From: Pavona decussata
Lineage: Eukaryota
Reading direction: 5' to 3'
DNA length: 64,000 nt
Assembly: GCA_977016875.1 (NCBI GenBank)
Contig: CDRNST010000088.1
Span: 248,001 to 312,000 of the forward strand
The translations under genes were made by a program, and so were the position numbers. This document shows positions 8,934 through 57,600 of the stretch, one piece after another (the stretch's first letter is position 1; each line of letters starts with the position of its first letter). Under the pieces are notes generated by a model. It saw only the letters and a list, made by a program, of their open reading frames with translations. It was not told the origin of the DNA and searched no databases.

Positions 8934-10670
8934 TCAAACATTGGTTTGATCAAGCTTGGAAAATGAGTTATGCTCTTCTTCAAGTAGTGACACGATCTCT
9001 GAGGGGTTATCTGAGTCAAAATCGATGTCTTTTTCTCGAGAACTTTTCTTTTTGTCGTTGCTGACCGAAGACTCTGAGCCATTCTCTTTCACCTCTTCTC
9101 CTTTTTCTAGCTGGACGACATTTCCGTTCCGCTTGTCATCGCTGATGCCTGTTTTCGTATGATCATTGCCATTTAGCGGTTTGAGTTCTATTTCAAGGCA
9201 TTCAGCAGAAGCCTTGCTGTTTTCAGAAGTTTTTCGAGAAGAGGCAAACACATAACTGACTTTCCTGAATTTATCATCGTCCGGATCTAACTGGCCTTGG
9301 TGTTTCAGCTTGCGACTTCTGTACTTCTTGTAAATCGTGTCAAAATTCGACACAATTACCGGCACAGGTAGGGCAATCGCTAACACACCACAAAGAGCAC
9401 AGCACGACCCAACTAGCTTGCCCCAAAGTGTCTTGGGATACATGTCTCCATAGCCGACTGTTGTCATGGTAACTAGAGCCCACCAGAATGCATCCGGGAT
9501 ACTTCGAAAGTACGATTCTTCGTCGCCATTTTCCGCGTAATAAACCATGCTGGAAAAAATGACTACACCGATAGCGAGGAAAAATATCAAAAGTCCGAGT
9601 TCACGTAAACTCTTCCTCAACGTCATGCCGAGAATTTGCAGTCCACTTGAGTGACGCGAGAGTTTAAAAATTCGAAACACACGCACAAGTCTAAGAATTC
9701 GGAGAAACGCCAGCGAAAAGTTCTGACTGTTGCTGTTCTTGAGCGCTAGCTCAACATAAAACGGCAAAATCGCCAGTAAATCAATCACGTTCAGGAAAGA
9801 ACGAACGAATACCCATTTCTGTGGACTAGCAATCAGTCGCACCAGATACTCGAACGTGAACCAGCTGATGAAAGCTATCTCAAGCTGACCGAACACTGCC
9901 TTCACTGACAGCGCATAGTCGTTATGCTCACGGATTTGCAGTTGTTTGGCGGTGTCGTTTGCAGGAATATTTTCCTCGGGTAAAACCGTGAACTCGGGCA
10001 GTGTTTCTATGCACAAAACGACAATAGACGCCACGATTACTGAAACAGACACCAACGCTAACACGCGTGCCGCTATGCTTGAATCAGGATATTCGAACAA
10101 TCTCCATAGAAACTTCTGTGCCTTCTTTTCCGGCAATTCCTGTTGCTTCTCTGGATGTTCTTCTTCGTTGAGAATGTCTTTAACCGCATTTACAGCGTAT
10201 TCGCCGAGCTCAAAGAATTGCACCTCTTCCAGTAAAATTTCCGGAGCGAGCTCGGGCGGACAGACCAATCGTCCATTTGATTGATAGAAATACAAAATTA
10301 ATTCGAACACTTGAATATTCCGATCAAAGAAATATTCGTCGTGATCCTCATCGTAGAACAGGTCTCGCTTCTCTTTGTTTCCTAGGAGAGTCGTCGGGAA
10401 CCTTTCTAATGTCTTCACATAAGTCATGTATCGGAATCCGGACACGTTCAGAACAATACGACGGCGTTTGGACGGCGCGGAGCGCTTTTTGACGTGACTT
10501 GAAAAGTTTTGTACGCCGCTATCCCCAGAAACTTCTCGATCATCACTGTCTAATTCTTGGTCGCTGTATTTTCCGTCTGCACGATCGGGAGGCACCGCTT
10601 TACTGGTTGTGATTTCCCTTTTCTTCAGCCTCAACGTGATTGCACCATGTGTACTTAAGCTCGCTCCCAT
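8934..10670 (-). CDS. Voltage-gated potassium channel, Shaker/Kv1 (KCNA-like) subunit; core coding exon, 578 aa from ATG 10670
   Basis: T1 domain (RIVLNVSG...EYFFDRN...LYFYQSNGRL), S1-S3, S4 LRILRLVRVFRIFKLSRH, pore DAFWWALVTMTTVGYGD, S6 IALPVPVIVSNF. A polypyrimidine acceptor ttttgttttgtttgtacag|GAGAAATG lies 5 nt upstream of the ATG. Confidence 0.97.
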   Translation of the reverse strand: MGASLSTHGAITLRLKKREITTSKAVPPDRADGKYSDQELDSDDREVSGDSGVQNFSSHVKKRSAPSKRRRIVLNVSGFRYMTYVKTLERFPTTLLGNKEKRDLFYDEDHDEYFFDRNIQVFELILYFYQSNGRLVCPPELAPEILLEEVQFFELGEYAVNAVKDILNEEEHPEKQQELPEKKAQKFLWRLFEYPDSSIAARVLALVSVSVIVASIVVLCIETLPEFTVLPEENIPANDTAKQLQIREHNDYALSVKAVFGQLEIAFISWFTFEYLVRLIASPQKWVFVRSFLNVIDLLAILPFYVELALKNSNSQNFSLAFLRILRLVRVFRIFKLSRHSSGLQILGMTLRKSLRELGLLIFFLAIGVVIFSSMVYYAENGDEESYFRSIPDAFWWALVTMTTVGYGDMYPKTLWGKLVGSCCALCGVLAIALPVPVIVSNFDTIYKKYRSRKLKHQGQLDPDDDKFRKVSYVFASSRKTSENSKASAECLEIELKPLNGNDHTKTGISDDKRNGNVVQLEKGEEVKENGSESSVSNDKKKSSREKDIDFDSDNPSEIVSLLEEEHNSFSKLDQTNV

Positions 10671-21287: not shown

Positions 21288-22319
21288 AGTTACTAATTTA
21301 TAGAAACCCGCGCTAACAAGCTATGAAAATGAATTCATAGTTGAATGTACTATTAAATGCGGCTTTGACTAGTCGAGTCAGATCCGACCAATCAGTCAAA
21401 TGGACCAAAGTAAAGCTGCGAGGCTATCATGGTTCATAAAACACAGTTTATCTGCCAAAATACAACCGATAAGAGTGATTGAAAATAAAAGGAGTGATAA
21501 GAATGGCCTCAATGTTCTTCATTTAGTTAATTAAAGAGAACCGTACACATTTCAAACTCTTCATTATAGGTCTCGGTGCAAGACGTTTCTTTGGCCGCAG
21601 GCCACTCTTATCAAAACCAAGCTAATCACTGAAAGCTAAGAATGTTAGAGATTTCCTATTTTTAATTAAAACTGTATACCGACAGTCAGAAAGAACTCGA
21701 AATTTCAAGCACTTGGGCAATATTTCCATTTGTCGTAGCACTACTTGATCGGATTATATATAAACAAGTGTGAAAAAAATTCCCATCATCTCCTTTGAAC
21801 AGAACATACGTTTTAGCTCAGCAATGAACACAAACAAAAGTCGTGTTGATTACGGGTATTTAGAGACAGATCCCGATAATCGTAGAATCTAGTTTTAATT
21901 GCCCCTCGATTGATTTAAGCTGAGGAGAGTGAAGTACATGCGCTCTTTTTACCGTCATCTGGGAATAGCACACAGAAGACACTTTTCTTAACGAACCGTC
22001 AAGTGGTTCTCCTTTTTAGATTTCTCCACAAAATTTCTTGACGTCATCACGAGCGGAACTCCGTCCGTCACGAGAATGCGCCAGCGCAATTCATGTTTTC
22101 CCGCGCTACTCGTTTCACATGAACAAATGAAAGGTTTGTGCCCTTTTGCCGTTCGCAAGAGATTCTCTCATGAAAACAATATTGAACGAGCATGTTCGCA
22201 ACCTGGAAACGTTCAAGTAGAAACATAGATGAATTGACAGAAGATGAAGGAATTACTTAACTCTTGCGTGGGATGTTTGGGTCATAATTATACAACGCAG
22301 AGTTTGGTTAAATTCTTAC

Positions 22320-30340: not shown

Positions 30341-30877
30341 CAAGCTGGCCACAAATCACATGGTTCCTTTTCGACCTAGTGATATCATTACTAGTACCGT
30401 ACCTTAAGTCCAAACCTCGACATAAAAATACCGAGTTTCGAGTTGGTAAAATATGATACAGTATCAAGCTAGCAAACAGTATGTGTACCATTGAGGATCG
30501 AACCCAGAGATTTTTCGGTGCGAAAATGCCTGTTGCGCGTGCAGGTCGATAAGGGGCCACGAGTGGCGACAGGCACCAGGCACGTTCTAGTTCTGTAGCG
30601 CGATCTGTCATCTCCTATATTTTAAAAACAACAACTGAAACAGATGGCAACTGTACACTCCCGGAATTAAACCTTGCCCTGCGTAATCTAGATCTGGCTC
30701 TAACGTCTTAATGGTGATATATCAATTCTAATGAAAGCTGCACTGTAAGCAGTATTTTGTTGTGACGTTTTTCATCGTCCGCGTCCGCGTTTATGGTATT
30801 TATATTGCGCTAGTTTTTATATATAAAAAAGGACAGTAAGTTTTTCTAATTTAACTATAAAAGTTAACGTTAAAAGA

Positions 30878-30916
30878 GAACGACGTTTCGACCGTCCGAC
30901 GGTCATTTTCAAGTTC
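30878..30916 (-). ncRNA. Second identical minimal hammerhead ribozyme motif
   Basis: Exact reverse complement of 32046-32084. Confidence 0.75.
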
Positions 30917-31095
30917 AAAATGAGAAGTAAAATATGTGTTTATATACAATTGTGAGAAAACTAATGAGATGCTGACTTAAAAAGCTCTAAGATATTCACA
31001 TCTAAACAATATCAAAAATAATAGCGTGAATGATAAATACAAAGGAACGCTAAAAACGATAAAAGGTATTTAAAAGGTATTTAAAAGTGAAATAA

Positions 31096-31663
31096 TTAAA
31101 CAAATAACTTCGCGCGGATAGAGTCGCATTGTTTGTTCAGTTTCGGCTTTAGGTCGCGAATAAACAACATCTCGAAGATCAAGCAGTCGAGTTTGCTCTG
31201 ACACTTTCTCAGGATTCTGAAGTTGCTTTTAATGGTCTCTGGATCCTGTCCATGCTCGTCCTTTACATGATTGCCAATTGCAGATCGTTTGTGTTCCTCC
31301 ACACGTTGATGCAAGTGTCGACTCGTGAAGCCAACATAGTCTGCATCGCACAGACCACATTTGAAATAATAAACAACGTTTTGTTGATTCACAATGGGAG
31401 GTTTATGTTCCTTTGGTTTGATTTTGCTCTTAATCTTCTGACTTGTGTAGACAGGATGGACATCAGCATCGATCTTTCGGCTGAGATCATTAAGTTGGTG
31501 TCTTACCGCGTTCGCCGATTTCTGGTCTTTGAAAGGTAGGACGATTCTGACGAGAGCTCGTTCGTCGGATACCCGTTGTTCAGGACATGCATTCTCAGTA
31601 ACTTTCGTTTCAATAAAATGTGTGATGGCGTTCTCTACGACGGTTTCAGGATAATGCAAGCGA
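31096..31663 (-). pseudogene. Truncated Penelope ORF (GIY-YIG endonuclease domain, RT missing)
   Basis: VVY..C..C...YVG.T.R.L..R..EH, conserved E and LN motifs; no native start. Confidence 0.85.
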
Positions 31664-32045
31664 GAAATAGTAAATGTAAACGACGAGCATGGACAGGATC
31701 CAGAGACCATGGACAGGATCCAGAGACCATTAAAAGCAACTTCAGAATCCTGAGAAAGTGTCAGAGCAAACTCGACTGCTTGATCTTCGAGATGTTGTTT
31801 ATTCGCGACCTAAAGCCGAAACTGAACAAACAATGCGACTCGATCCGCGCGAAGTTATTTGTTTAATTATTTCACTTTTAAATACCTTTTAAATACCTTT
31901 TATCGTTTTTAGCGTTCCTTTGTATTTATCATTCACGCTATTATTTTTGATATTGTTTAGATGTGAATATCTTAGAGCTTTTTAAGTCAGCATCTCATTA
32001 GTTTTCTCACAATTGTATATAAACACATATTTTACTTCTCATTTT

Positions 32046-32084
32046 GAACTTGAAAATGACCGTCGGACGGTCGAAACGTCGTTC
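32046..32084 (+). ncRNA. Minimal type I hammerhead ribozyme motif (U3-A8 variant) in the Penelope pLTR
   Basis: GAAC-UUGAAAA-U-GACCG(UCGGA)CGGUC-GAAAC-GUC-GUUC: stem I GAAC/GUUC, stem II GACCG/CGGUC, palindromic ACGU stem III; predicted cleavage after C32080. Confidence 0.75.
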
Positions 32085-35000
32085 TCTTTTAAGGTTAACT
32101 TTTATAGTTAAATCAATTTCGAAAAACTTGTTGATTCTTAGTTTTTCTTAGACATGTTTTAAAAACCTTTTCCGGCCACATTTGTGCGTTTTCATTCTTT
32201 CTTTGAAACAAGCCACACTTGAACAATTGGAGAAGGTCGATTTTTTTTTTACCATTTTACGAGTGAATGAAAGGCCAAACTGTGCCTGAAACACTTCTAA
32301 TAAATGAATAAATAATAAATGCCTTTATTCATTCAACCGTAGAGTACATATTGAAAGGTTACAGAATAGATATAAGAACATCAGTAATAGTAAAACAAGC
32401 AAAATCAAGCGTAATACAAGACAGAAACAGAAAGAACGTATTATACTACAAACTTATGCTTAACCCTTTAACCTTTTTTGTTCGATTTATCGCTCGCCGG
32501 CGAACGATAATTTTACTCGCTCGGTACAAGTAGTCCAAGTAGTCTGAAATGTCAGCCGTCTCCTCCCCCTAACCCCTGTCCTCCCCCGACTAGGTACAAG
32601 AAGAGAAGAGCCTCAGTGTCAGAAAACAAACAATCCCAGATACAACGTTTGAAAGAAGAGGCTTCTGGTATTGGCAAGTCACAAGGAGTGCTTTTAACGT
32701 TCTCTGGTAATTTCTAGTAAACTTAATATCTTCAAGGTAGTTTAATGCAAGAAAAACATAGGTTAAAAATGCGACATGCTCACTGTGTGATCTGCCTGTG
32801 AAACAAATCATTCATCGCATGCAACCCTCAGTTTGCCAATTATAGTGAAATATCGTGCCATAGATGTGGAGGGCAATGAAAGGGTTCCAGTTTAAATTCT
32901 CAAGCTACAGCCTGACAACATAATGCAATTTTCCTAGTTTAATCAGGACCAAAAAAGTGGAATATTTGACCTTGTAACTCCATGGGGGGCCAGCTATCAA
33001 TGTAAACACAGAAAGAAAACGATGTGTTGTTGTTGACAGTTCCTATCGCTATAATGTTACAAAATCAACCCAGAACAAGGCGAACTCAAAAACATGCGAA
33101 TAAAACGAAGTTTTTAAAAAGGGTTAAACATTGTTCTCTTGAAGTATCCTTTTTCAATGTGATTTCGATATCATAAATGTGTGCCAAGCGCGAGGCCAGA
33201 ATTTCCGAAGATATCCGAATAATTCCGAAGATTGCCGAGGACAAAAAAGGTACAGTACCAATGCGTTTGGAGAGTTTTAAATCAGACCGACGGCAGCGAT
33301 ACAACGTGATTTATATGAACTGAACTTAATCAAATAGTATATCTTATAGCAATTTACTTTGGTCTGTTTGGTTATCAGTTTGTCCACTAAAAAAATAACA
33401 CAGATCAGTTGTGACTCACAGAGAAGTTAGACAATGGTGTGCATGTTCCTGACCGGGTCCTGAACCAGTGAGATCCACAGATAGTGGAGACATGCAGGGT
33501 TTGTATTAAGCTACAAGTTTTTTTCTTCTTACCTTTCAACTCGGTCGAAATCAGTCAATAGTAATGGCAAAATTAATAAAACTCGTAGGCTCGAACAGCC
33601 CAGTTGTTGCCGGCCTGAGGTCAAGTAAACAACTTTGTAATTATCTCCTGCTTTGCACTGTGACATAAAACATGATGTGCTAGAAATGAGGGCATTTAAT
33701 CCAATTAGTAGTTCAAAACCACTCACACATTTCCGACTTTGTGTAGGACGCATATCCGCAACATCCTTGGCATACTTGCGATCAAAAATGTAAACAAATA
33801 AACAAACAAATTTGGAGCAGACGAGAACACACGTAATACGATGGTACCTCGCGCTCTAGTAGTTCTCATAACCAGGAGGGAATCACTCCTGTCTTTACTT
33901 AAATAGCCAGACTTGAGAATTTAATCCGCAGATTCAAATCTGAATAGTTTCAATACAAATAATCGCTCTCAGGAACTTTATCGTTTGTTTTCAAAATGAT
34001 AACCGGGTTAAGGATCTAATGACTCTGATAAATACCTTTTTATTACTTTTCTTATGGGATTATAGGAATGATCACGGACTCTCTGGAACTTGGAGCATGA
34101 GAAACCGGTTTAGGGGTCTCATAAGTCAGATGATTGCCTTTTAGGCAAATTGGCCACCATAAAGAGATTCTAGTGCTAACGCTCGAATCTCTCAATGGTG
34201 GCCAACACCTTTAGTTATCAACTCTTTTGATAAATGAAACATTAGCACTTAAACTTAACATTAAACTTTAAACTTACCTTAAACTTACCTCGCGCGCTTT
34301 TTGTATGACTGTGACGAACAAGTCAGACAACCCTGTGAAAGTTTGATGTGAAATTGATTGCGAATTCGAGGAGACCTACAGTCGTTTAAGCAAACTGAAG
34401 AACAACAAGAATGATCCTACTATGATCAGTAAAAACAGTGATATCACTGGGATCAGTTACTGATCACTCAGTGAAATGTACAAACGTGTAAATAAAACAA
34501 AATTCTCCGCGGTCCGCAAAAATTTGTTACTCGCACATATGCTTTCCTAAAAAAATGTGTGCTCCACTTTAGACTCAGCGTAGGCCTTTATCACCAGCTC
34601 CATACCGCAAGTCAATTAGGTAGTGCTTCTAAACCAAGGCATTAATTTTTGTTACTTAAGTTGAGCCAGTCTTGGAGAAATTCAGTTTTTTTTTTCTCCA
34701 CAACTGAGCTCTGTTATATTTGGAATGGCTAGAATGATCCCTACATCTATCGTGCCAACAATCTTTCCTTATCAAAAATACTTGATACCGCAAACCTCCG
34801 AAAAAACACCAGTTTGAAAACAAAACTTTGGAGTATACGATAGGAGATAGCTGTGCTCGTAGGCTGAACGAAGAGCAATTAAAAAGAGGATCGGAACCGG
34901 TTTCCTTTCGAGAAGAAGTTATAAAAAGCGGAAGGAAAGTCTTCAGGACATTTTCAGTATTTCGATTACAATTTGGCAACATGACCGCAAAAGAAACACT

Positions 35001-39625: not shown

Positions 39626-42600
39626 ATTATTATCTATAATGTGATCAACATTTTGCAACATTGGGCTAAAAGGTATCGATAGTAACAGTAAGGCCTGCAT
39701 CCTGCAAAGGAATGAATTACGAGCTTGCCAAAACCGAATAAAAGTACACGGAACAAACCGAAAACAAAGTTTGCAAAGTAATAGGAATGACAAATCACTT
39801 CTGCAGTCTTAACAAGCAAGGAGTTAGAACGGTTTTCAATAGGGTGTCGAACATAATTTCCGTTACTTTTGTTTTTGCTTCAGTGCACCGTGATTGGTTA
39901 AAAAAAATCGCGTCAAACCAATAGTGACTTGACGGCGTGTTTTCCCGCACTTGAGGCAGTTTACTTGTATAATGTTATTTACTTCGAGTGTTGATTGGTT
40001 CGTTGTTATGTTTACGTTTTTTGTGTTTGGTTAGAGTGCTTACATGGTTTTGGTTTTACGACGCTCAGTTGCATGGCGAAAACAACCCCTCTTTCGACTT
40101 GTCTGATCAGACTGATCACTTAGATCAGATTGACATGTACAGTCAAAGCTTGGCATCATCATCATCAACTAATGTGGAACTCTTCATTCGTCTCCGTTCA
40201 GGCTGTCGGAGAGCCAGTCTCTACGATAATCCTTTAAGGGCTAATGCTTTATTAATGATACGTAAATTATATAAGAAAAACTGGTACGTTGTAAGCCGCG
40301 GATAAAGAACCCTGCTAGCACAGGTTGTAATTTTGTTATAAGGATTGTTTTGTGGCAATTCGGTTACAACTTCGTCAAAAATGTGTATTGTATAAGTTAA
40401 GGTCAATTAAAATAGCTCGAAAGTCGATATTGTAAAAAGACGTTTTAAAGATTGAACAAAACCCTTGTCAAGCGCTAACATAAAACATGTGAGGCGTCGG
40501 TGGTATAGTGGTGAGCATAGCTGCCTTCCAAGCAGTTGACCCGGGTTCGATTCCCGGCCGACGCAGTTCCCTTTTCGTTTTTTTTTTTTTTCTTAACTGA
40601 TTTTCCTGAACAGGATGAAGCATTTTTAAATTTGACGCCTCACTCTCTTTTGGCCTGTAAGTCGGTCAGTTCCAGACTCTTCCTTGGTTTTTCCGCTGAC
40701 TCGGGTTTTTCCAGCAACGAAATTCTGATTTAAAACTGTAGAGTTATTATTCACATGTATTAAATGCAACCAGATTCAAAACTTCGAGATATCTAGCAGG
40801 GGTTATTTAGCGCTGGTACGAAAGTGAAATGTATAATTTCTACACCCACCTCGAAAGTAAATTGCTGTCTCGGTATGTATTCACCAAAAATTCTGACCAT
40901 ATTCTTTTCTTTTTTCTGAAACCTTGTGAGAGATAGAAACAGATTGCGACAAATTGTTTGCGTCTTTCTATGATTCGGTGTCTCAGCGCTTTCTTTTTTA
41001 ACAATATATGAGATACCACGTTTCGGCCCTTTACGGGATGAATAACTGACATAAAACGCAGCTGTACTATCTGTCGTTTTCTAGTAGTGCTCGGAATCAT
41101 GTTAATATTTGGAAATATTGAACGGTGGCTATTACAAAAGTTTCTCATTGAGTGATTTTTCCCCAGTGCCCATCAATTGTGGGCTGCCGAGTGCCCGGAT
41201 GAAGGAGTCTGTAGCCTAGCCATGATGAATGCAGAGTTCGCTCTGGATGAAAATCAAATTCCTTTAAAGTCAGGATTACTGTTCGCTGGACACTACAATG
41301 GACAAATATCACTGGTCAGCAGTAAAGGTGACGTCGGATTAGGACATTGTACTCCTGTAATTACACCTTTCAAAAACAATGGAATAAAATTTCGGCGTCA
41401 CACGATAAGAACTATTCATAATTTATCTTTCTCCTTACAAGGAAGCAAACAAATTAACAATCAAATAAAGAACAACAACAGACTGCTTTAACTCTGTAGT
41501 TACTCCAGATAGCCCCCCCTCCCCCTCCCTTTTTTAAATAATTAATTAAGCATCATAACTGTACTGTGACTGAAAGTTTTTTTTTTTTGGAGAGTGGATG
41601 GGGGGGGGGGGGGGGCGGTGGAATAAAGCTTGTTGTATTGTATTGCATCTGTTTCAATGCGCTCGCGTATACTAGTAACGATTTTTCCAATAGGCTCCCA
41701 CATTATTGTTTACTTTTTTTTCGATGCAGTGGTAGACTACATTGCAGTATCTACAAAAGTTTTGCATATTGCGATGAACTTGCGTCTTCTTGAGAGTCCA
41801 TTTGATGACATAGACTTAATTACAGGAGTTAAGATTTATCTGACGTGAAGAGAGCTAATGTATATTTTTATTTCCTTTCAGATGCCTACATGAAAGAAAA
41901 CGTTCAAGCCCATCAAGGCGAGGTTACGTTTCTAAGAGTTTCAGCTTCATTGACCGAGTCACGTGACAATCTTGCATCGCATGACCACCTAGTTTCGTGC
42001 GGTACTGACTGCACCGTCAGGATATGGCAACTTATCCATCGGGAAGTCAGTTACGTGTCAATCCAACAAATGGCTCTTGTGAAATTGCTTCAGCTGCCAA
42101 GAGACCTGGAAATGGCGGGCAACACCTTATGTATGGCCATGGCAGATAACAACGTCGTCATGTGCAGGTGAAGGTTTGGCTTCGTCCATCCTCATATCTC
42201 TCTACTTTAATAAACTAATCGCCAGACACTGAGGGCTCAGTGATACACTCGAGGTTTGCTACCATGTACTCTGACGAAGGTTTTGCTAGAAAACTCACCT
42301 TCGTTGCCTTCGGCACCCAAGAAACGGAGCTTGAAGCGAGATACATTCCAAAGCAGAATAGGGAGTAAAAATTGTGCTTATCTGACTGTAAGCCATCAAA
42401 ATAGTCTTTCAAAATCTTTCTAATATCTGTCTCATGTCCATGTAGCGTAACGATGCAACTAATAATTTAATTTCATGTTCTAAAGTACTTCCTTTGGGCT
42501 AGCCTACCACTTATGACTGAATTCGTCTCTTCTCCACACAATGTTTTCTTAACTTCTTCTCTTTGCTCGAGCTATTTTGCAGTTGACAAAAATTTGTACT

Positions 42601-45600
42601 GATCATTGGAAAAACGGTTAAAAGTTTAGAACGTACAGCCGGTTTGAACTGTTGAGGTTGAAAACATTGCGCAAAGAAGAATGTAGTCTTCCTCATAATA
42701 AAACTGATGAACGCGTTGACCGTCGATCTACTTAGGTTTTGGTTGATATTTCGTTACATTTTTCTGGCCTCGTATATCAGTCGTGATATTGAAACTAATT
42801 TGTGTAGGCTGCTTTCACAAGCTTCGACGCTGCGCGCAAAAAGGAAAGAAACATATGCATCGAGCGCGAACAGAGATCTGTTGTTAGGTACAACTTCCGG
42901 TCTCGAGGGAGTCCGCAATAAAGGGAGTTGACTGTACATGGGTAAAATACAAAAAGAGAAGCACCTCCGACGGGATTCGAACCCACAGTCTTCGGCTTCT
43001 CCGGACTAGGAGGCCGACGCCTTATCCATTAGGCCACGGAGGCAACTGTGGAAGCTCTGAAATTAAAAAAATAATTGTTATCTAAATTTTCGTTAAAATT
43101 TGAAATATCAAAACACCTCTTTGCCCCCGTTTTTCCTCGTCGCCTCTGTGGCCTAATGGATAAGGCGTCGGCCTCCTAGTCCGGAGAAGCCGAAGACTGC
43201 GGGTTCGAATCCCGTCGGAGGTGTTCCCTTTTTTTATTCACTATCGCATGTTAGCGACAAAAACAACAGCAAAAACAAGAAAAGCGACAACAAGAAACAA
43301 CAATAACAGCAACAACGTTATTTTGCTTTAAGAAATTACAAAACGAAGTGCGATCTCTGCAGTGACTAAGTTTTTGAGTCCCATGCGCACAACAGATCAA
43401 TCAGCTAACGACTTTCATCTTTTGGCAGTTCGTCAAGAGTTGAATTCGTCAATGGCCCTTTTTTGAAAGTATGGTAGACGTACCGTACTTGATCTTAGAT
43501 AATTCAAGCATTTAGTTTTTAATATAAAAAGTAGTCTGAGAAAGATTCCCGAGTATTGATTTGATAACACTTTGCAACCTCTTCTGTTCCATCAGAGTGC
43601 GAGAAGAAAACAATTGTGGAGCCAATGTGTTCAACACAGTTAAAAAGACTCACGAGTTTTTAACCCATTCCAGAGACGAAGGACACTCCGCACCTATTAA
43701 TGGGGTAAGAAAAATATGCGAGGCAGCGCACTATACCACAAACAACACCGACACACAATAAGAACAGCAACACTGAACAAGAACAGCATCAAATCAACAA
43801 AACGCCTTTACACTGTTTCGTTCTCGTCCTGAACTGCAATTTAAAAATGACGATGAGCATTACTTGATTTTAACTGAGAGCCTTTATGTTTTGGGTGAGC
43901 CAGCGTGAGTGCAATGGTCTTCGGACCTCATCCTAGGGGGAGGAGAACAATGCCAAATGTGTGTGTTCACACAGCAAAAACCAAAACATCCTCCAAACTA
44001 TCTGCCATGCGGACTTACACAATCGAGTCAGTAGGCCAATGAAAGAGACGGAGCAACAAGTATCTCAGACTACGGACACAAACAAAAACGTCACAGACAA
44101 GCAAAGAAGACAAGTGGAGATAATCCGAAGAGGGCGACTCACCAAACACTATCTCTAGACAGTCAAGCACTACACAAATGGTGCACTGGAGAGAAGGTGG
44201 AATGTGCGGTAAAGAGGAAGGAAGATTAGACCGGTCCAGGTCTGAACGCCGGAAAGTAGACGGGACGGCAATTGGTCAGTTGATTTGTCAGCATCCGCCA
44301 GTAGCCGAGCCGATTGTGGTCATATTCCAGAACCTGCAGAGAATGCTTACCGAAGTCAACATACCGCAACAACACTGAGTTATGATGACGCACCGACTGT
44401 TGACAGGCGGCATACATATCGATGGGACATGAGGAGGGTAAAGAGGGTCGGATACGTCCGGAAGATCAAATAGCAAAGGTGGTAAAAAGAAGCATGGCAA
44501 GTACCAGAGCTAGACTTAGAACAGAACTCTACCGCTCCATGGAGGTAACATTTTCCATAACAACCCGACCAACTTTCATGGAACGGGACATCCTTGTTGA
44601 GGGTCATCTTGACTACACCGTGACGACTGTCATGGTACAACTCGAGGAAACTCTTGTGTTGGCTAAACGTAATGGAGTGTACCTCACCATATCATGCAAA
44701 GGATCCACCAACAACACCAGCAGTAACCTTAGCACGGACAGTCGTGGAGATAAACCAAACGCGATTTACGCTCAACGAACAACGCTCAAAGGAGACGACT
44801 TGGAGGGACGAACACAAACTTGAGTGGTCTTGTAGGTTCCAAGGACGGCACAATTACGTAGGAACGGGATGACCTTGGTCTTATCCATGGATCGAGGCAG
44901 CTCAGCAAGGATGGCTAACGCCCCCACTGATCGATATAAACTCTCCGGGAAGAAGGCTACGAAGCAGTTAGGGTACTGGCCAAATTCGGTATTATAAAAA
45001 AAGTGAAAAACAAGACTTGAAAAATTAAGCCGTGTTCAACGCGGAGTGAACCTAGATGGATAACCGATGTGGCGGCCCAAAATTAGTGATAGAAATCACC
45101 AAAAATAGTCTGAGCCAAAGTCCATAAATCAACTCTTGTCGTAAAGGAAAAGACGAGAAAACTCCACCCAAAATGTCTGGGCCTCCGGTCATACTCTCAC
45201 GATTACATCCAGGCACTGATAGAAATTAGTTTCTTTCAGGGGTGTACGCGAAAAGTGAGTTTTATCTAGCACTAAAAAGCCAATTTACTATTGTGTTAGA
45301 CGGGTCTTTTGGATAAGAATGACAACCTTCTGAGACTCTTGAGTTTTAACTCAAAACTCGGTAAAACTGTAATTTAAACATTACATTATGGCGTGCACTA
45401 TTCTGTGAACATAGCATTATACAGGTCGGCTACACTAGAAAGAGACTCATTGATTTTGTTTCTTTATTCTCTCAAAAACAGCTCACGTGCTGCTCGACGC
45501 TTGGTTTATTTGCAACATCAAGTGAGGACCAATGCGTTAAAATTTGGAATTGTGACAACCAGTTAGTGAGAGAGATGTGTTTTGACGAGTCATTGTGCGG

Positions 45601-54600: not shown

Positions 54601-57600
54601 TTGATGGACATGGGAGTAGTTCATTTCAACCTCCCTTGTAATGACAACGCCGTCTTACTGGAGCTGGCGGCTCGACTCAGACGAGAAAGAGAGAAAAAGA
54701 AGGCAAAAATGACAGACATGGCAGATGATGAGGAATCTCTCTTGGACGATCTGAGGTCTACAATGAGAAGAAGGCCATTCAAAGCTAAGCTCAGACACCC
54801 CAAAACCATGGTAAAAGACATTACAACAGTCTACGATATGTGTATGGACGAGTCAGTAACCTTGGGGCCGGATTTACTTAGCCTAATGTTTAAAAAAATT
54901 CCTTTGATCAACAGCTTAACTTTCTTGGCAAAGTGTTTTCTGAAGCACAGTACGGTTAACGGCCAGATACCTCTTCCAGTTCGATATTTAAGAGAAATAC
55001 GTGCTCTGGGTACAAAATTCCTTCAATCAAATTAAATCAATCGCTTCCAAAATGAAACGTGCATGCCTGCATCCCACTCACCGCATTAGTATGCTGGAAA
55101 CAAATTAGAGAATACCTCACAGAGACTTGATGAAAACCAATGGTTTATTATTGCGAAATTTGTGAGACCGTGCTATGGGAGATAAAATTTTTCAGGTTGA
55201 AAGAAAATTTCTTTCTAGCAATGTAGTTATCAATTGGTTTTGTATCTGGTGGTTTTGAGATTTTTAAAAGAATTTTCTTATTTTCTTCTCCACAACAGAA
55301 CAGACGGTTGAGGAATACTCCCAGAAGTGGCCACCGCAGGCCTTCTATTTTAGACGAGCCAGCATCCCTGTCAAACACAGACAGGCTTAAGAATACCCTG
55401 AAAAGATCAAAGTTTGGCTGCAAGCTGCTGCAGAAAATGCAGCCTTTTAGACAAGACATTATCCCAGGCTACACTCCGCCGTCAAGCAAAGAAATGGAAA
55501 TTGGGGTAAGATCAGTTTTGTGGATTTCGCTCGTAAGAGTATCATTGTTGGTCACTCAGGCAGTCTGCCACAGTGTTGAACATTTAAAAGCTTTTTAAAG
55601 ATTAAAATCATTGATTTTTGGCTTTTTTTTACGAATTTGAAACCAGACTGAGATCAGAAAAGAACTTATTGCCCAATGTTAGGTTATTTTCACGAATTTG
55701 AGGCCAAAAGGGAGTGAACGTATCTCTCCATTTTTGACTATTTTCACGCTTTTATATAAAGGAAAATACAGGGAGATGTAAAGAATCAACCATAAGAGGA
55801 CACAGAAAAAATCTGAGCCCCAGATGGAATTCGAACCTACGATCCTCCGTGTTCTAGATCGGATGCTCTAACCTCTGAGCTACTGAGGGCAAGGGTCATT
55901 TTTGTGGGTTGGAGTTACAAACCGCATCACGCGGTCACGCGGTCACGCGGTCACGCGGTCCATCACGATTTTGAGACCAGAAAAATTAGAACTATGTTTT
56001 ATTTTTGTCTATTTTTCCCGAATCTGAGACAGAAAGAATTGAACTTATTGCTCGATATTTAGCTTTTTTAACGAATTTGGTCCAAGAAGGAGTGAACTTA
56101 TTGTCCGATTTTTTTGGCTATTTTCACGGATTTAAGACTAGAATGGATTGAACTTCTTGCTCGATTGTTTGGTATTTTCTTGAATCTGAGACCAGAAAGG
56201 AGTGCACTTATTGCTCGATTTTGGCCTAATGTCACGAATTTGAGTCCAAAAATCATCGCGCGCAACTAGTAGCAGTAAAGGTGTATACCGTTATAGAAAT
56301 CATCACCATACGATCCTAAGCATCGTACAGGAATCGAACAGAAAATTTTGTACTTTTGAAGGGATAAAATGGAAGGCAGTTGAGGTTTACTCAACTAAAT
56401 GACTTTACAGCAAACGAACACAGCTGATTTGCAATTAGGTCAACACACACCAGCGAACCGAATTCGCCAAGAAAACAACTTACGAAGACTGAAGCAAAGG
56501 TTGTTTCAGGTCGATTTTCCGGAGAATCCGTGATTGAATACTTGTCTTCCAATAGCCTCAATACATCAGAAATATCTTAGGCGAATCTCTTTCTATTCTT
56601 ATCTAGCGGTAGAGTTTACCGAACGCCCATATTTTCGACATTATTGCTGGTCTGTCTACATTTTCTTTCTTTGTGTTGAGTCACGTATGTTAATCCATTT
56701 TAATTATGTCAATTTCTTTGCATTAATTATTCTATTGCTTCTTTTCCTGTTGGTTAATAACGATGACGCCACTCGCTTCTGATTGGTTTGCCATCAAGCT
56801 ATTGTTATTTGCCTATATAAGTGGGACACCACCCGGATGGTTTGGGCGGAATCAGTAAACCTGACACACAGCATACAGAATCAACCCTCCTCTTTTGTTA
56901 TTCATAGAACCCAATGATTTCCATAGTACATTACTATGCAATACGCAATACAATGATCTTTCCATCCAATCACGCTTCAATAAAACAAAACACAAAACAA
57001 CACGAGACAAGGACAACAAAATAGGACACAACGCAAGCATAACAAAATGACAAAACATTCCTACTCAACACAACACAAGAAACAAAAAACAAAGAAAACA
57101 TACCTACTTAACAAAACACTACACAACACCAGAGAATACAATAGGACAAAAGACTAGACAACACAACATATAATGATACGATACGGTACGGTGCGATGCG
57201 AAGCGATACTCAATTTAAAATCCGGACACTGCTTTTCAAAATGTTTTGGATGTCAAATGTTTCATAAGGATTTCGAAACCATTTTAGTTTCCTCGCAACA
57301 GATCTGTCTCTTGCTCGATTTTTTCACGGATATGAGACCACGCCGGTTTTTCTTACGAATTTGAGGCTAACAAGGAGTGAATTTACGGCTTCATTTTGGC
57401 CTTTTTCACGGATTTTAAACGAACTTAGGTCTTGATTTCTAGCTATTCTCACAAATTTGAAACTAAACAGCAGTGAACTTCTTGTTCGATCTCTGGCTAT
57501 ATTCAGCCAGAAGTATGAACTTTTTGCCCGATTTTTAGCTATTTTGACAAATTTGAAGACTAGAGAAAATTGACTTATTTCCCAATTTTTGCCTATTTTC

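Follow-up and report, generated by a model that had tools for sequence, protein, structure and literature searches.

Two hammerhead motifs lie on opposite strands of the window, by which we mean the whole stretch of 64,000 nucleotides of Pavona decussata DNA that was analyzed. Very probably, they mark a single insertion of a canonical Penelope-like element (PLE), which left two 5'-truncated copies head to head, each ending in a minimal type I hammerhead with a U3-A8 core. The first-pass annotation had also assigned the motifs to minimal type I hammerheads of a PLE, and as far as sequence can tell this assignment is supported by a PLE endonuclease in the flanking ORF and by covariation of the stems and of the 3-8 pair. 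The same annotation had called the motifs non-canonical, a label that we dropped since U3-A8, the extra nucleotide and the palindrome are all published hallmarks of PLE hammerheads (PMC4209133).

Anatomy of the locus and identity of the element

The features of the locus are listed in Table 1. Its inverted-repeat arms (30849–31257 and 31705–32113, 409 nt each with 3 mismatches) had been described as pLTR arms. This description had to be replaced; instead of being LTR-like flanks of an intact element, the arms appear to belong to two 5'-truncated copies that arose in one insertion event. The stretch between the arms carries the left arm onward as the minus-strand ORF, and the locus has neither a reverse transcriptase nor a promoter-bearing upstream copy. 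The short 3' end of the minus-strand copy was the same as in other family copies, and the plus-strand copy, whose ORF ends at 31866, contained a 20-bp tandem duplication (31685–31724). In family copies the hammerhead was located ~180 nt past the ORF stop, with ~30 or 55 nt separating it from the 3' end, depending on which of the two ends is present.

Table 1. Features of the paired PLE insertion (window coordinates).
Feature	Position	Strand	Basis or remark
Target-site duplication, left copy, AGTTTTTCT (9 bp)	30839–30847	.	Same 9 bp recur just outside the other end
Longer 5'-truncated PLE copy, short 3' end without tail	30849–31667	-	Inverted-repeat arm; family contigs diverge at 30850 and 31667
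Minimal hammerhead, copy 1	30878–30916	-	Predicted C17 at 30882, predicted cut between 30882 and 30881; sequence search and fold
PLE ORF remnant: linker and C-terminal GIY-YIG endonuclease, C-x2-C...H-x-H	31096–31667	-	Translation; stop codon at 31096–31098
Filler of six bases where the two copies meet head to head	31668–31673	.	Family homology of the minus copy stops at 31667; arm of the plus copy begins at 31674
Shorter 5'-truncated PLE copy	31674–32137	+	ORF end, 3' UTR, hammerhead and tail
Minimal hammerhead, copy 2	32046–32084	+	Identical to copy 1; predicted cut 3' of C32080; sequence search and fold
PLE 'tail', 24-nt extension at one insertion end only	32114–32137	+	Likewise in 9/9 family pairs examined
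Target-site duplication, right copy, AGTTTTTCT	32140–32148	.	Direct repeat of the left copy

The ORF of the window matched the Pfam GIY-YIG domain with an E value of 4.8e-4 and 20.8 bits, slightly below the cut-off of 22.6. In L031, a copy of 2.36 kb from another part of the genome, the same protein runs on into a reverse transcriptase that matched Pfam RVT_1 and contained the motifs PDKG and YGLPKTHK; this copy is decayed too, with one stop codon and with YVDH replacing YVDD. By its predicted protein, the element is a PLE of the canonical clades, combining a reverse transcriptase with PLE motifs and, at the C-terminus, a GIY-YIG endonuclease with the CCHH motif. The presence of CCHH excludes the Hydra clade. 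The CX2-5CxxC linker motif was not seen in the ~100 residues preceding GIY-YIG, which favors Penelope/Poseidon over Neptune/Nematis, an assignment that follows the PLE clade description in PMC8557442 and not a tree. A candidate for the 5' part of the element, L031:1630-2830, was rejected because it is a repeat of 1.2 kb that is unrelated to the PLE and occurs hundreds of times in the genome; this repeat sits between the two PLE arms of that locus, and its copies were 94–99% identical (331 candidates at first look). At another locus (L032:3566-7591, minus strand), an intact-looking 1341-aa gag-pol ORF of an LTR retrotransposon, with aspartyl protease, reverse transcriptase and RNase H, was observed between two hammerhead copies of the window's PLE family that are 8.9 kb apart.

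The 31-nt hammerhead core occurred in 209 copies with no more than 3 mismatches in the 602-Mb genome, compared with 0 for the control pattern, and at least 100 of these copies were identical. Among the 100 copies listed, we found 23 adjacent pairs in the minus/plus orientation, with the hammerheads outermost, and none in the plus/minus orientation; about half of the listed copies belonged to such pairs. Spacings within the listed pairs ranged from 138 to 3986 bp and were all different, suggesting that every pair was a separate insertion event. In all 9 pairs examined, one end stopped ~30 nt past stem I and the other had a further extension of ~24 nt. Target-site duplications in family pairs were 9–12 bp in length and enclosed the whole pair. 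Besides, only 4 family copies reached the 5' region of the element. It has been described that PLE insertions are heavily truncated at the 5' end, lie next to an inverted copy that is likewise 5'-truncated, and bear a tail of 30–40 bp at one end only (PMC8557442). Judged from its sequence features, the insertion in the window carries this signature, including heavy 5' truncation, the adjacent inverted copy, the tail at one end and the target-site duplication.

Among the 100 listed copies of this hammerhead family, no direct-repeat (tandem) source copies at unit spacing were found. A tandem array of another family was observed at G000:C2:3460327-3470923 (plus strand), with at least 6 units ~2.1 kb apart, each having a U3-A8 minimal hammerhead with stem II GGAGUC/GACUCC. 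This direct arrangement is thought to suit dimeric cleavage, and the array is a candidate source locus.

Poseidon of Anolis carolinensis (PAc) has been reported to cleave and extend both target strands, and its reverse transcription starts at two adjacent internal sites, which define the 'tail' (Frangieh et al. 2024, PMC11167929). An enzyme of this type, with two strands cleaved and extended and two start sites for reverse transcription, would explain why the insertions are head to head and tailed at one end. By their match to published PLE insertions (PMC8557442, PMC11167929), the opposite-strand ribozymes are probably a by-product of PLE integration and not a matter of ribozyme design. According to this model, the PLE endonuclease would cut both target strands and reverse transcription would prime from both, beginning at one of two internal sites so that either the short end or the tailed end is produced; this would leave a pair of inverted cDNAs, both truncated at the 5' end, with a target-site duplication on either side. 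The strict minus/plus orientation and the single tailed end support PLE priming from both target strands. Twin priming of L1 is similar in that a single integration leaves two 5'-truncated cDNA segments, inverted relative to each other and bounded by target-site duplications. In L1, the parts joined are the inverted 5' part and the direct 3' part of one copy, whereas here both segments are 3' ends, so that both outer ends share the terminal sequence.

The inverted pair might itself be functional, either as a hairpin-forming non-autonomous element or as a source of small RNAs, with the two ribozymes acting together. This possibility draws on the 99% complementarity of the arms, on the very stable hairpin predicted for the whole unit (-834.5 kcal/mol) and on the many genomic copies that are paired. 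However, both the spacing and the truncation points vary by locus and a separate target-site duplication flanks every pair, and such a variable architecture suggests independent integration products and not copies of one unit. Also, about half of the listed copies were without a listed identical partner within 4 kb (a partner with >3 mismatches would be unlisted), and the ribozyme is predicted to be unable to fold inside the hairpin. We consider a functional pair very unlikely and retain an insertion by-product as the explanation. In the predicted fold, 39 of 39 bases of the sense hammerhead were paired with the antisense arm, in agreement with an earlier proposal that any transcript of the locus would carry one sense and one antisense copy, so that cleavage would be blocked or need a trans partner. 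With no reverse transcriptase and no promoter-bearing upstream copy, the element at 30849–32137 is dead, and read-through RNA would sequester the ribozyme in a long hairpin of 409 bp.

Hammerhead core and its covariation

Both motifs are 39 nt in length and identical, the minus-strand one being the exact reverse complement of the plus-strand one. The sequence that had been claimed for them, GAAC-UUGAAAA-U-GACCG-UCGGA-CGGUC-GAAAC-GUC-GUUC, was found exactly on both strands by sequence search, and the further claims of one extra U before stem II and of a stem III limited to the palindrome ACGU could be read directly. Stem I is GAAC/GUUC, and stem II is GACCG(U)/(A)CGGUC, with 5–6 bp and G10.1-C11.1 as the closing pair. 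The core UUGAAAA corresponds to U3 U4 G5 A6 A7 A8 A9, after which the U is bulged; 3' of stem II come G12 A13 A14 (GAAA), the palindrome A15.1 C15.2 G16.2 U16.1, and C17. Direct reading gave the consensus base at all core positions but 3 and 8 (U4 G5 A6 N7 A9, G12 A13 A14, A15.1-U16.1 and H17). A search with the 31-nt core returned 2 matches in the window and 0 in 100 shuffles. At 21614 (minus strand), the window has one more pattern match, which has neither stem I nor stem II and was rejected as a chance match.

We also considered whether the two motifs themselves could be a chance resemblance, in which an ordinary GC-rich hairpin of the 3' UTR beside A-rich sequence looks like a hammerhead without being one. 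The minimum-energy fold of the monomer consisted of stems I and II, and two results would fit such a resemblance: the fold energy was no better than that of shuffled sequences (z = -0.38), and Rfam gave no hammerhead match at either window motif, at the gathering threshold or at E≤10. However, Rfam was also without a match on canonical-core minimal hammerheads from the same genome, which suggests that the miss was caused by the absence of a stem III hairpin in the minimal architecture and not by U3-A8 alone. Besides, the other 11 positions of the core are all in place, as are H17 and the pair A15.1-U16.1, and the architecture was found thousands of times, with covariation both of the stems and of the 3-8 pair, compared with 65–181 matches for reversed-pattern controls. 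A chance resemblance is thus extremely unlikely, and the two motifs are treated below as hammerheads.

Combinations at positions 3 and 8 were counted genome-wide using the motif form N-UGA-N-N-A ... GAAACGUC, with the reversed pattern as control. The counts were 2707 for U3/A8 (control 181), 2183 for C3/G8 (control 65), 295 for C3/A8 (control 81) and 229 for U3/G8 (control 83). They tally copies rather than independent events; C-G may have given way to U-A only once or a few times, and long ago. Most of the mixed matches (C-A and U-G) were visibly single-base variants of abundant paired families, representing decay. The dominance of the paired combinations argues for the earlier suggestion that U3-A8 is a compensatory replacement of C3-G8, and the genome-wide covariation at 3/8 supports the published 3-8 pair. 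U3-A8 was at least as common in this coral as the canonical core with the same GAAACGUC box, which may be a new observation.

Covariation of stems I and II and of the 3-8 pair across genomic copies, set beforehand as a test of the motif, was seen between families. The U3-A8 class contained at least 12 families, whose stem II sequences differ and compensate; G10.1-C11.1 and the bulged U were present in all of them. A second U-A family had CUC/GAG as stem I, compared with GAAC/GUUC in the window family. In an alignment of 9 families, 87.8% of cells were paired versus 60.3% after shuffling, and the covariation score was 0.79 versus no more than 0.24 in slid controls; 9 of the 10 stem pairs were altered on both sides, with G-C invariant at 10.1-11.1. 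This stem evidence is independent of sequence retrieval, because the stems were absent from the search patterns. It is possible, if somewhat doubtful, that U3-A8 represents the core of a long-lived and diversified PLE hammerhead lineage in this genome, with at least 12 families and ~2700 copies.

Variation was also observed within the window family. In one copy (G000:C6:1460000-1460030, plus strand), changes on both sides had turned a G-C pair of stem II into A-U; the G-U intermediate of that pair was present in two others (C4:1708179 and C7:595975). Both stem II changes are CpG transitions and may reflect decay and not selection. A canonical-core PLE hammerhead at L043:389-421 (minus strand) had the stem III palindrome ACAUGU in place of ACGU, which corresponds to the type of 2-nt palindromic insertion described for Drosophila PLEs.

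Dimeric pairing, RNA-library contigs and the role of the ribozyme

ACGU is unable to fold back on itself, so that stem III requires a second copy, with which the palindrome would form a double hammerhead. This pairing was predicted to be geometrically feasible and sterically nested. With nearest-neighbor energies, the double hammerhead had -22.3 kcal/mol compared with 2 x -10.3 kcal/mol for like-paired monomers, a gain of only ~1.7, and there was no gain at all over two monomers at their minimum free energy (2 x -11.1). The marginal gain predicted for the dimer is consistent with the published weak, dimer-only cleavage (PMC4209133) and with the protein-assisted hammerhead of Anolis (PMC11167929). 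The best dimer of RNAcofold was a stem II duplex, a solution open to any hairpin, and was rejected as uninformative. Following the literature, the substrate in source elements would be multimeric or tandem transcripts, to be cut after C17 by a ribozyme that would probably act as a dimer with help from the element's protein.

All 21 sequencing runs were in the form of assembled contigs, which cannot show RNA ends. Contigs of two libraries recorded as RNA, and of two others guessed to be RNA, covered the element and not the unique flanks of the window, suggesting that they were derived from other family copies. Several of these contigs ran uncut through the predicted site and the tail into other flanks (records 9 and 14 of X10 and record 23 of X9 are from libraries recorded as RNA), as read from contigs, which hide RNA ends. 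Uncut family sequence is present in the RNA libraries, with DNA carry-over as a possible source. Runs X9, X10 and X13, which are metatranscriptomes labelled microbial mat, contained this coral PLE family at 95–99% identity, pointing to nucleic acid of the coral or a close relative in those samples.

These uncut contigs bear on the question of whether the ribozyme has any role. The sequence could be that of a real hammerhead and still be a passenger, kept in the inherited 3' region with no role in retrotransposition, or a parasite. In Anolis, the PAc hammerhead cleaves only with protein assistance and is dispensable for insertion in vitro, where ribozyme-dead mutants inserted normally, and none of the RNA-seq reads stopped at the cleavage site (PMC11167929). 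Similarly, Naiad PLEs thrive without hammerheads, and parasitism was raised by the authors of that study (PMC8557442). The contigs uncut across the site in the present data fit the same view. However, at least 20 families with diversified stems have kept the Watson-Crick 3-8 pair and G10.1-C11.1 fixed, and few matches have an unpaired 3/8 combination, most of these differing from a paired family by a single base. This pattern indicates that the catalytic fold is kept by purifying selection in those lineages from which new families arise, and we regard a mere passenger as unlikely. If cleavage of the U3-A8 RNAs takes place in protein-assisted dimers, perhaps in trans between transcripts of the many dispersed identical copies, the families would provide a natural mutational data set for the 3-8 tertiary pair and also a system for testing the role of the ribozyme in PLE transposition.

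Relation to known systems and other features of the window

The minimal hammerhead ribozymes of PLEs (min-HHRs) were defined by Cervera and de la Pena in 2014 (PMC4209133), who reported U3-A8 covariation (~1300 hits in Schistosoma mansoni), an additional nucleotide between A9 and G10.1, a conserved G10.1-C11.1 pair, palindromic positions 15.2-16.2, opposite-strand pairs 100–700 bp apart, and poor cleavage in vitro, even of dimers. The U3-A8 min-HHR of Cercyon from S. mansoni (PMC4209133) shares with the window motif its type I architecture without a stem III hairpin, its location in terminal repeats and its opposite-strand pairs. In contrast, the host here is a coral and not a flatworm, and the window family is young and nearly invariant, with its at least 100 identical copies. 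The hammerhead of PAc also differs from that of the window, as it has C3-G8 and overlaps the start of the ORF, whereas the window hammerhead has U3-A8 and follows the stop codon (PMC11167929). In its account of the stony coral Acropora millepora, the 2020 report of de la Pena et al. (PMC7229834) gave more than 6000 type I hammerheads, mostly minimal and PLE/Terminon-like; the focus of that account is on canonical, efficiently cleaving hammerheads of retrozyme repeats of 220–240 bp, which are unlike the window motif.

Since the architecture, U3-A8, the bulge, the dependence on dimers and the opposite-strand pairs have all been published, nothing here is considered new in kind. Only two points may be new, namely how common U3-A8 is in this coral and the particular young family that was identified. 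These results have little import for general ribozyme biology. They are of use for annotation, in that Rfam models miss motifs of this kind, of which the genome has ~5000, each an exact marker of the 3' end of a PLE insertion.

Several features unrelated to the hammerheads were also observed in the window. A full-model match to Rfam RF00485, the potassium-channel RNA editing signal, was found at 9345-9458 on the minus strand (85.4 bits, E value 3.5e-16); the conservation behind this match may be that of a coding sequence or that of an editing hairpin. In addition, Rfam identified four tRNA genes, at 40494-40565 (plus strand), 42962-43043 (minus), 43142-43223 (plus) and 55816-55889 (minus), the second and third of which, 82 nt each, form a divergent pair ~100 bp apart.
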